From assembly GCA_033442325.1 (NCBI GenBank), contig JAWQFM010000036.1:190222-216334 (forward strand): 26,113 nucleotides of DNA, read 5' to 3'. Both the position numbers and the translations under genes were made by a program. Shown in pieces: positions 8,560 through 11,500 of the stretch (its first letter is position 1; each line of letters opens with the position of its first letter). Below the pieces are notes generated by a model, which ran no database searches, was not told the origin of the DNA, and saw only the letters and a list, made by a program, of their open reading frames with translations. The stretch is from Salpingoeca rosetta (taxonomy: Eukaryota > Protista > Choanoflagellata).

Positions 8560-11500
8560 TCACGACTCGTCGTCCGCGGCCCGCTCGTTCGGGCGATTGA
8601 GCGCTTTTTGAACCACTAACAATTCGTGTGCACGTGATGATGATGATGGATGGAAGAAGGTAGTGGAAGACGGGCGAAGAGAGGAGAAGGCGGGACAGGA
8701 GTGAGGTCATGATGGGAAGCAGTGGCAGTGTTCAAACATCCAAACATGCTCGCGGGTGATTTGGCGCGTACTGTAGTGCCGCGTGGTGTGCCGTGTGCGT
8801 GTGTGCGTGCGTGCGTGTGTGTGTGTGTATGTGTGTGTGTGTGTGTGTGTATGTGTGTGTGCGTGTGTGTGTTCGTGTGTGTGTTCGTGTGTGTGTTCAT
8901 GTGTGTGTTCACGTGTGTGTTCACGTGTGTGTTCATGTCAAACAGGTACATCGCAAACTCCATATTGCCATCATCATCATCACCGCCGCCACCACCGCTC
9001 TGACAACAACTTACTTGCGAGGATGACATGAGGGGAGCGGAGAGACGTCGCAATCGAGCGGCAGCGCGTACACCGCTGGTCTGCACCGTGATGATGGTGA
9101 TGTTGGTGGTGATGTTGGTGGTGATGTTGGTGGTGTTGGTGATGGATGACGTGAGATGCACATTTCCGATCTTATCCATCATGAACACATACACATGCAC
9201 ATTCGTACGAACACACACATGCACACACATGCACACACACACATATGCACACGTGTACATGTACGAGATGTAGGCAGCAATGCGACACACGACAAGGATG
9301 CACGTGCATACATGCTGGGATGTTGTGTGTGTACGCAGCGGGTGAGCAGTTGTAGTGATTGCGACAGCCACGTGGCAGGCGCTTCAACACTGTAGCACGC
9401 GTAACATGATTCAAGATGAGACAGGAACACATGAATCCGTGTTGCATGTTGCGTGTGTGTATGTTTGTGCGTGTGTGGTTAATGGCCAATAGGTTGATGT
9501 GAACCCAACTCGACAACAAAACACACAAACATTAATGCACACATATGTCAACGCAAACAAAAGCACGAATGCAAACGCACGCACCGCCAATGAATTCGTG
9601 GATGGTTGTGGGCTCCTGGATGACCTGCCGTGATGAAATCCATTTGCGAATGTCGTTGTACACGCCACCGTAGCACGTGCCACAGATCCTGACAACATTG
9701 TTGGTATTGGGAGTGATGGTGAGGGTGCTGGTGAGACGAAGACACAGGACAGCACACGAGACAGCACATGCACGCACACAAACACACAAACACACAAACA
9801 AACAAACGAACGAACAAACAAACACACAAACAAACAGACAAACAACCAAACAACCAAACAAACAACCAACCAAACAAACAAACAAAACGCCATCGGCCGC
9901 ACATTTGATTGCATCACGTACTGCAGCTCTGTGCGGCGGCCGGGACCAGAACAGATTGGACACACGCACGTGCGCTCCTTCTTGCCGCGGCCACTGGCGC
10001 CCGATGCTGGCCCTGGTGCCGCTGATGATGATGATGACGAGGGTCCCTTGGTTGTGGCTGTGGCTGTGGTTGGGACTGCTGCCAGATTCGGTGCACCGCC
10101 AACACCCGCAACGCCGACACCAGCGAGGCCATGACCCACGTGTGGTTGTGGCAGTGCTTGCGCTGTTGTTGGTGTTGGTGTTGGTGTTGGTGTTGGTATT
10201 GGTGTTGGTGTTGGCGTGCGTGCGCCTCCCACGCTGCTACCGCTACCGCTGTGACCACTGAAGCGGCCACACCCACGGCGACTGCCGCGAGCACTCATCC
10301 TCCTCGTCCTCATCGTCGTCATCATCCCATCGCCAATGCCAACACGCGGCGTTGCCAGCGCTGACGCCACACCAATGCTGCTGCCCGCAGTGGTGGCGGT
10401 GATTGTGTGACCACCCGTGTGCAGTGTCGGCAGCATGAGTTGGACGAGGAGGGGAACAACGCTTGGATCAACGTCGCCCGTGCCCAGCAGCTGGTGCAGC
10501 GTGTGAGTTTGCTGCAGCTGTTGCAGTTGTTGGTATTGCTGCTGCTGCTGCTGCTGCTGCTGCTGCTGCTGGTGGTGGTGGTGGTGGTTGTGGTGTGGTA
10601 GGCCGACTTGTTGTTGTGGGTGCGTTGGATGCAGTTGCAATGGCTGCTGCTGGTGGTGCTGGTGTTGGTGGTGTGGTGCAGAGAACATGCGCTGCTGGTG
10701 CTGGTGTTGGTCTTGCGGTTGGTTCGGCTGGTCAGATGACTGAAGCAGCATTGGCTGAGGCGTTTGCGTTGGGGCAATGGAGATGAGTGGAAAGTGCGGG
10801 TGCTGTACGTCAGCATTCGAAAATGAGGCTGTGGTGGGCGTGCCCCGTGTTGTGCCCTGTGCAGTTTCATGGCTCAATGGATGTGAGCCGTGATGTGAGC
10901 CGTGATGTGAGCGCGAGCGACGGTGCTGAAATAGATGCTGCTGCTGCTGCTGCTGTTGTTGTTCTTCTTCTTCTTGGTGTTGGTGCTGCTGTTGTTGTTG
11001 TTGCTGCTGCTCTTCTTGCTGTTGCTGCTGTTGTTGCTGGAGGCTCTGTACAAACGGCGCCCAGCTTGCAGGTGACGAAACGGCGTGGTTGACACCACCA
11101 CCACCACCACCACTACCACTACTGACACGAGCATTGCCGCTGGCTGCGTCACAGCCAAGGAGTTGCTCGTCACCCGCCATCGTCATGATCAGATGCAGCA
11201 GCTGCGCAGATGACAAGCCCGACAGGTCCTGTTGTTGTTGTTGTTGTTGTTGTTGTTGTTGTTGTTGTTGTTGTTGTTGTTGTTGTTGTTGTTGTTGTTG
11301 TTGTTGTTGTTGTTGTTGTTGTTGTTGTTGTTGTTGTTGTTGTTGTTGTTGCTGCTGTTGCTCTCTGTCTGTCTCTTGGAGGCTGCCTGCTGCTGCTGCT
11401 GCCGCTGGCTGCGAGGGAATCAGCGGTGGGGAAAAGGGCGCGGGGGACGATGCGTGCGGTGCCGCGTCAAGCTGCCGTTGCCGCGTGATCGTTGACGGCA

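Follow-up and report, generated by a model that had tools for sequence, protein, structure and literature searches.

Nuclear receptors are known from textbooks as transcription factors specific to animals, and how their DNA-binding domain (DBD) arose is an open question. Does a zinc domain encoded by a choanoflagellate bear on it? The DNA that raises this question is a stretch of 26,113 nucleotides (nt) from Salpingoeca rosetta (contig JAWQFM010000036.1, positions 190,222 to 216,334), here called the window, and unlabelled coordinates below are positions within it. S. rosetta is a model choanoflagellate with transfection and CRISPR, and many of its sequencing runs contain this stretch. The window carries the 3′ half of one gene on the minus strand, made up of a long Q-rich exon and four short exons, whose product ends in a domain of about 120 residues that contains eight cysteines. 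An initial annotation, made from the sequence alone, read this domain as either a pre-metazoan relative of the nuclear receptor DBD or a convergent treble-clef DNA-binding family. The explanation that we prefer, with a probability of roughly 65%, is that it belongs to a new double treble-clef zinc family with a predicted fold like that of the nuclear receptor DBD, and that its most likely function is sequence-specific DNA binding by a transcription factor.

Exon structure of the gene

Exon 1 (9922..13115, minus strand, as are all exons and introns described here) was taken from the list of open reading frames (ORFs) and the sequence, and its bounds are those of the open frame and not of a mapped start codon or 5′ exons. 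It is of low complexity, being rich in Q, H and TP, and includes a polyglutamine tract, (CAA)n/(CAG)n, at 11230-11351. The C-terminal end of the frame (13115-9922) is GRGKKERTCVCPICSGPGRRTEL, in which the basic stretch GRGKKER is followed by the first Cys pair, CPIC (Cys codons 9962-9960 and 9953-9951). Intron 1 (9689..9921; 233 nt, GTACGT...CAG, phase 2) is TG-rich, and its position is common to the paralogues L003, L012, L023, L024, L025, and L026. Exon 2 (9585..9688) encodes ICGTCYGGVYNDIRKWISSRQVIQEPTTIHEFIG. This exon contributes the family signature CYxG(V/L)YNDIxK and the second Cys pair (9684-9682 and 9675-9673), at which the predicted helix 1 begins. Intron 2 (9390..9584; 195 nt, GTGCGT...CAG, phase 1) matches the position of an intron in PTSG_02264 (locus L020), L025, L021, and L008.

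Exon 3 (9312..9389) encodes (V)LKRLPRGCRNHYNCSPAAYTHNIPA, with the family signature LPRGC and the third Cys pair, Cx5C, at 9366-9364 and 9348-9346. Intron 3 (9081..9311; 231 nt, GTATGC...CAG, phase 1), in which the stretch 9204-9263 is TG/CA-rich, interrupts a Tyr codon that is split in exactly this way in PTSG_02264 and L025 too. Exon 4 (9015..9080) encodes (Y)QRCTRCRSIATSLRSPHVILA and carries the fourth Cys pair (9072-9070 and 9063-9061), together with a nearly invariant Arg after the eighth cysteine and an invariant Pro. Intron 4 (8616..9014; 399 nt, GTAAGT...TAG with the acceptor at 8617-8616, phase 1) contains CA/TG microsatellites, and has the same position and phase as the PTSG_02264 intron between PELVLQ and MIRKQ. 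Exon 5 (8560..8615) encodes (M)VQKALNRPNERAADDES followed by the stop TGA at 8562-8560, and supplies the C-terminal helix of the domain. The joint between exons 4 and 5 reads ...SPHVILA-M-VQKALNRPNERAADDES-stop, and exon 5 resembles AVVQKVIARK of the S. infusionum protein P0008.

The spliced frame is ...KKERTCVCPICSGPGRRTELQICGTCYGGVYNDIRKW...LPRGCRNHYNCSPAAYTHNIPAYQRCTRCRS..., which gives CPIC-x11-CGTC-x37-CRNHYNC-x14-CTRC. The junctions proposed in the initial annotation, 9922>9688 (phase 2), 9585>9389 (phase 1), and 9312>9080 (phase 1), were found to have the donors, CAG acceptors and phases that it had given, and its spacings of 11, 37, 5, and 14 residues were the same on recounting. It had split the domain over four exons. 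These four stand, but the fourth, which ends at 9015, is not the last, since exon 5 (8615-8560) is needed to complete the domain. About 45 residues had been thought to follow the last cysteine, and the count is 32.

The junctions were compared using a family profile (A3) made from 28 other family proteins, with the product of the window not among them. The three junctions together with exon 5 score 116.7 bits (E 1.7e-37), compared with 72.1 bits for the earlier GTACAC donor at 9334, 10.4 bits for an alternative donor at 9903, and 4.5 bits for the unspliced ORF, so that they beat these alternatives by 45 to 112 bits. The domain is indeed not visible in any single ORF, as had been noted, and homology selects the donors originally chosen in preference to either of the two alternatives, which would have taken the cysteines out of a common frame. 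Reading through exon 4 to a stop near 8980 gives 107.9 bits, and is ruled out by this score and by the conserved position of intron 4; for the GTAAGT donor at 9014, the acceptor at 8617-8616 scores best among all downstream acceptors tried.

The same structure emerges from comparison with paralogues. A six-frame search of the window's own assembly (55.4 Mb in 68 contigs) with the spliced C-terminus found an intron-less paralogue, L001, on contig 13. The spliced 108 residues match it over residues 7-97 in one open frame, with 46% identity and E 1e-21. PTSG_02264 (P0002), P0006, and P0011 were mapped onto their own loci, and have GT-AG introns with positions and phases as in the window; the split codons shared with these annotated paralogues are the Tyr before (R/K)CTRCR and the Met after P-x5. 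It is concluded that the exon structure of the window gene is confirmed at the level of homology.

The Cys8 family

Database searches and motif scans found at least 17 loci in the S. rosetta genome that carry the same three signatures, namely CP(I/V)CxGPGR-x5-(K/R)(I/V)CxxCYxG(V/L)YNDIxK, (L/M)PRGC-x5-C, and (R/K)CT(R/Q)CR(S/T)(I/L)A...P. We refer to them as the Cys8 family. After splicing, the product of the window has the family pattern CPxCxGxGR...CxxCYxG(L/V)YNDIxK...(L/M)PRGCx5C...(R/K)CTRCR...P in a single frame. Loci L002, L004, L006, L007, and L014 were left out of the comparison. Two of the copies are intron-less, L001 and the divergent L022, and the remaining loci carry introns. Some of these introns are at the positions found in the window and others are elsewhere, including an intron between CxxCY and GVYNDI in six loci. 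Such a mixture of shared and differing positions is what a real coding family should show, and chance should not.

Some of the loci lie close together or are very similar. L001 (G000:C13:1454030-1454383, plus strand) and L026 (~1455.8-1457.1k, minus strand) are tail-to-tail family genes within about 3 kb, and two identical 129-nt matches at C30:460401 and C30:485141 look like a recent duplication. One predicted protein, P0016 (paralogue L008, G000:C13:1015k), has the PRGC exon joined straight to the final exon and so skips L008:1071-1136 on the minus strand, which encodes DHRCTRCRTIAVCRQFPKKMQQ and with it the fourth Cys pair. P0016 is either a gene model with a missed exon or an alternative isoform that lacks the second zinc site.

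Outside S. rosetta, a profile made from contiguous pieces (A2) was searched against 1.84 billion representative proteins. It matched 50 proteins at E≤1e-3, 21 at E≤1e-10, and 3 at E≤1e-30. Sources were looked up for 30 of the 50, and every named source is a craspedid choanoflagellate: apart from S. rosetta these are Microstomoeca roanoka, S. infusionum, S. kvevrii, S. helianthica, Choanoeca perplexa, C. flexa, Barroeca monosierra, Hartaetosiga gracilis, H. balthica, and Mylnosiga fluctuans. The family is thus present in at least 10 craspedid species besides S. rosetta, from which the proteins are transcript-derived. The rest of the matches looked up are metagenome or Logan proteins, and no animal, filasterean or other lineage occurs among the named sources. 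The closest relative of the window domain is P0008 from S. infusionum, with 47% identity. A word-based protein search gave no matches either with exon 1 or with L001, the exon 1 query probably being swamped by polyglutamine words. No paper describing the family was found in a literature search. The initial annotation had suspected that the source was not an animal; this is borne out, as the organism is S. rosetta and P0002 (PTSG_02264/XP_004996749.1) maps exactly to L020. Judged by its sequences, the Cys8 family is new, has no Pfam entry, and has so far been seen only in craspedid choanoflagellates.

Conservation was assessed from the alignment of 28 domains (A3). A MAFFT alignment of 48 exon fragments (A1) had misaligned the CxxC pairs and was discarded, and A2 and A3 were used. 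All eight cysteines are invariant in A3, which answers the initial suggestion that their conservation be checked in homologues. Invariance also extends to the Tyr that follows Cys4 and to one Pro beyond the last zinc helix, and almost to the Arg that follows Cys8. The family spacing is Cx2C-x10-16-Cx2C-x37-50-Cx4-6C-x11-15-Cx2C, with a first loop that is mostly 11 residues, and the consensus around helix 1 is CxxCYxG(L/V)(Y/F/W)xD(I/V)xK. Paralogues differ from one another in the residues between Cys3 and Cys4. The domain has a net charge of +7 to +16, with a mean of +10.4 over 29 sequences.

The domain is mostly found at the C-terminus of long, Q-rich proteins of low complexity, and is preceded by a basic stretch which in some paralogues resembles an AT-hook, such as KRGRKPRP in L025/P0006 and RRGRPSRK in P0012. 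Such stretches stand directly before the first Cys pair at L025:288-362 (KRGRKPRPE), at residues ~117-130 of P0012 (RRGRPSRKSPRP), and at L003:1879-1953 (KRGKKPRPP), and the window protein has only GRGKKER here. Ten full-length members were scanned against Pfam and gave no domain whatsoever, and thus no ligand-binding domain (LBD). A Pfam scan of the single exons of the window gene, including exon 1, likewise gave no domain.

Predicted fold and possible relation to nuclear receptors

Structures were predicted for two family members. Model 1 (S. rosetta L001, 15-row alignment) has a predicted local distance difference test (pLDDT) score of 92.2 and a predicted template modelling (pTM) score of 0.82, and model 2 (S. 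infusionum P0008, 28-row alignment) has pLDDT 95.0 and pTM 0.85. The layout is common to both. A short β bridge near Cys pair 1 is followed by a 17-residue helix starting from Cys pair 2, two short extra helices, a loop containing Cys pair 3, an 11-residue helix starting from Cys pair 4, and a long helix after the invariant Pro. In these predicted models the domain is a double treble clef with its two helices packed together, and the models suggest two successive C4 zinc sites, each composed of a knuckle and of the helix beginning at the second Cys pair.

The models were compared with known structures using Foldseek against the Protein Data Bank (PDB). Nuclear receptor DBDs account for 45 of the 50 best rows for model 1 and for 48 of 50 for model 2, and include RXR, USP/EcR, TR, TR4, COUP-TF, ERR, HNF4, GR, AR, VDR, and LRH-1. 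The best E-values are 0.56 and 0.17, with probabilities up to 0.96, template modelling (TM) scores by target of 0.56-0.71 and a root-mean-square deviation of about 3 Å. At E≤1e-3 this search gave no match for either model. By shape, the top clusters in the ESM Atlas are zf-C4 (TM 0.57/0.60 and 0.50), with ComF and double-zinc-ribbon models as a second tier. For the two models, the top whole-domain matches by Foldseek, VIA-align and the Atlas are nuclear receptor DBDs at middling scores, and not an unrelated fold, in agreement with the initial proposal.

The reading as a DNA-binding transcription factor is based on the basic charge of the domain, the basic stretches, the Q-rich context, and the variability between Cys3 and Cys4, together with the predicted fold. 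The family would then bind zinc and DNA and would act in transcription. The two zinc modules would pack as in the nuclear receptor DBD, to which are added a helical insert of ~20-25 residues that separates the modules and a long basic helix that follows the invariant Pro. The zinc domain, with the AT-hook-like stretch before it in several paralogues, would bind DNA, and the Q-rich remainder may act in activation or condensation.

Several observations weigh against this reading. The evidence for the fold consists of predictions with middling scores, and the splice model rests on comparative evidence. Nucleic-acid binding by the domain is something that we infer. In the predicted helix 1, the basic KGFFRR gives way to YxG(L/V)YNDIxK, which includes an acidic residue, so that this may not be a recognition helix. 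In hmmscan at E≤10, PF00105 (zf-C4; gathering score 21.1 bits) did not match either the spliced window domain or L001, and it is not among the 25 most frequent families listed for 28 members. Comparison of A3 by hhalign with the RXR DBD, and with a 20-sequence nuclear receptor alignment (A4), gave a probability below 1% and E 0.057. The RXR-alpha DBD query was identical at 77/77 positions to PDB 8j54_C; A4 is biased towards RXR, with an effective number of sequences (Neff) of 2.9, which makes this a weak comparison. The only stretch that hhalign aligned is finger 2, with all four cysteines in register.

Other sequence tests were also negative. The spliced 108 residues match no Pfam family at E≤10, and sequence searches against the PDB gave chance-level matches only (an antibody, the eS31 zinc ribbon and FKBP). 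The nuclear receptor DBD has the spacing Cx2C-x13-Cx2C-x15/17-Cx5C-x9-Cx2C. This is not the spacing of the Cys8 family, which agrees only in Cx2C and mostly in Cx5C. The family lacks the recognition helix CEGCKGFFRR with its P-box, and no Hormone_recep ligand-binding domain (PF00104) lies C-terminal to the domain, the window protein ending 32 residues past Cys8. Because the PF00105, hhalign, spacing, helix and LBD tests all failed, the Cys8 family falls, on sequence grounds, outside zf-C4 in the Pfam definition.

A six-frame search of the whole genome with PF00105 gave two weak matches, neither in the Cys8 family. L027 (G000:C31:210311-210472, plus strand) scores 24.1 bits, narrowly above the cut-off, in a 134-residue frame of the form SC...FLRRS...C...RC...C, from which most zinc ligands are missing, and looks spurious. 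A match like this could enter Pfam-based counts of zf-C4 in choanoflagellates. L028 (G000:C23:207872-208033, minus strand) scores 16.8 bits, below the cut-off, in an 886-residue frame, and was not recovered by hmmscan of the ORF. Its frame reads VCTYCIKFF...RHCFGCLYQRCLDVGI, which resembles CEGCKGFF...RNRCQYCRYQKCLAVGM.

The resemblance to the nuclear receptor DBD (zf-C4, as in the glucocorticoid receptor) can nevertheless be described in some detail. In both, eight cysteines make up two consecutive C4 modules, and in each module a helix has the second Cys pair at its N-terminus. The second module has Cx5C, and Cys7 is preceded and Cys8 followed by Arg (RCxxCR). The helix after Cys7-Cys8 is about 11 residues long, and beyond it comes a further C-terminal helix, an extension also present in TR and RXR. 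The Cys8 family lies, moreover, in the sister lineage of animals. In contrast, there is no significant sequence or profile similarity between the two. The first loop is x10-16 (mostly 11) compared with x13, the linker is 37-50 residues with two extra helices compared with 15-17, and the loop of the second module is x11-15 compared with x9. CYxG(L/V)YNDIxK stands where nuclear receptors have CEGCKGFFRR, and there is no ninth Cys. The ten full-length members described above have no LBD, unlike nuclear receptors, and the domain is mostly C-terminal in proteins of low complexity. The initial annotation had limited the likeness to Cx2C, Cx5C and RCxxCR, and had pointed out the differing loops, the replacement of FFRR, the absent ninth Cys and the missing LBD in the window protein.

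Could the two domains share an ancestor? A true relative of the nuclear receptor DBD, sister or ancestor, could have been present in the common ancestor of choanoflagellates and animals, with the LBD joined to it later in animals. We regard this as possible, though with odds somewhat below even. It would fit a family that occurs in the sister group of animals, whose two C4 modules come in the same order, with Cx5C in the second and with RCxxCR, and whose cysteines are in register in the one stretch that hhalign aligned. In the predicted structures, nuclear receptor DBDs are the sole whole-domain matches for two independent models in three libraries. It would also fit the account of zf-C4 given by Lopez-Escardo et al. 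(2019; PMC6792448), where the Pfam domain is found in choanoflagellates without a hormone-receptor domain and is concluded to predate animals. That set is likewise an NR-type zinc domain alone; it rests on Pfam hits, without proteins being named in that account, and differs from the Cys8 family in that the latter is not recognised by PF00105. Common ancestry is made less probable by a profile-profile probability below 1%, by the lack of a PF00105 match in any member tested, by the different linker and loop lengths, and by the fact that neither the P-box nor the FFRR helix is conserved. The treble clef is a fold that has arisen repeatedly, the scores of the structural matches are middling, and the family profile found no animal protein at E≤1e-3 among the 1.84 billion.

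A convergent two-zinc module, unconnected with nuclear receptors, that binds protein or RNA in place of DNA, such as a MYND- or PHD-like finger or a double zinc ribbon, seems to us rather unlikely. There are hints of it: zf-MYND clusters reach 0.88 in the Atlas feature search, KMT2D PHD fingers match weakly (E 0.84), ComF and double-zinc-ribbon models form the second tier by shape, and helix 1 lacks the basic residues of the nuclear receptor recognition helix. The bacterial family DZR_2 (PF18912; N-terminus of ComF/GntX) resembles the first CxxC-x10-16-CxxC, and gives below-threshold matches in 13 of the 28 members, with a best E of 0.0012. Its best scores are about 15 bits (15.2 for P0008) compared with a gathering score of 27 bits, it covers only ~30 residues, and it leaves the helices and the second module unexplained. 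Indeed the MYND, PHD and DZR_2 matches are all sub-threshold and limited to the first CxxC...CxxC, whereas the whole-domain matches of the predicted models are nuclear receptor DBDs and not MYND, PHD, LIM or zinc ribbons. The strong positive charge, and the AT-hook-like stretches before the domain in paralogues, fit nucleic-acid binding. It might finally be argued that the domain is an artefact of the gene model, in which cysteines come together by chance from joined TG-rich sequence and the real transcript ends differently. The model is a comparative one, TG-rich introns do yield Cys-rich junk frames, and the window's own product is absent from the protein database matches. We consider this extremely improbable, given that contiguous paralogues and orthologues derived from complementary DNA match across every junction, that the profile score is 116.7 bits compared with 4.5-72 for the alternatives, and that intron positions and phases are conserved with annotated paralogues.

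A new double treble-clef family with a probable DNA-binding role is the reading that we retain. The results support the pair of possibilities in the initial annotation without singling out either one, as neither Pfam zf-C4 nor hhalign gives a significant match that would decide between a relative of the nuclear receptor DBD and a convergent family.

Other features of the window and significance

The introns of the gene contain CA/TG microsatellites at 8800-8960 and 9700-9900, and their TG-rich sequence gives rise, on either strand, to long junk ORFs rich in Cys and Val. A convergent neighbouring ORF at 7132-7779 on the plus strand, which has an ankyrin-repeat-like stretch, LLRLAIERKNEEMVKLLVQQGACIHVTD, bounds the gene at its 3′ end. 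Further upstream in exon 1, 12285-12359 on the minus strand (residues 253-277 of the exon 1 frame) encodes VLFDWLIGERVGDGQVMRACDVIKHFL, which is like an N-terminal motif, (V/L)xxx(W/F/Y)xxG...AC(D/E)x(I/V), that occurs in the family members P0002, P0010, P0023, and P0033. The score of this stretch is weak, at 7.1 bits from a profile of four seeds only, and is above those of all 200 shuffles.

The claim in PMC6792448 that zf-C4 predates animals is made there from Pfam hits, without characterisation. The Cys8 family, which is conserved, has at least 17 genes in S. rosetta, is invisible to Pfam and has a predicted fold nearest to the nuclear receptor DBD, offers concrete proteins that bear on the origin of this domain. 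The case of P0016 suggests that short 3′ exons can be missed in the annotation of S. rosetta, and the family as a whole is missing from current domain-based inventories of transcription factors. Even if it is convergent, it would rank, for choanoflagellates, with the larger families of putative transcription factors that are specific to a lineage. If common ancestry is true, a stand-alone double treble-clef reader of DNA would have existed before animals, and would have been fused to the LBD on the animal stem.

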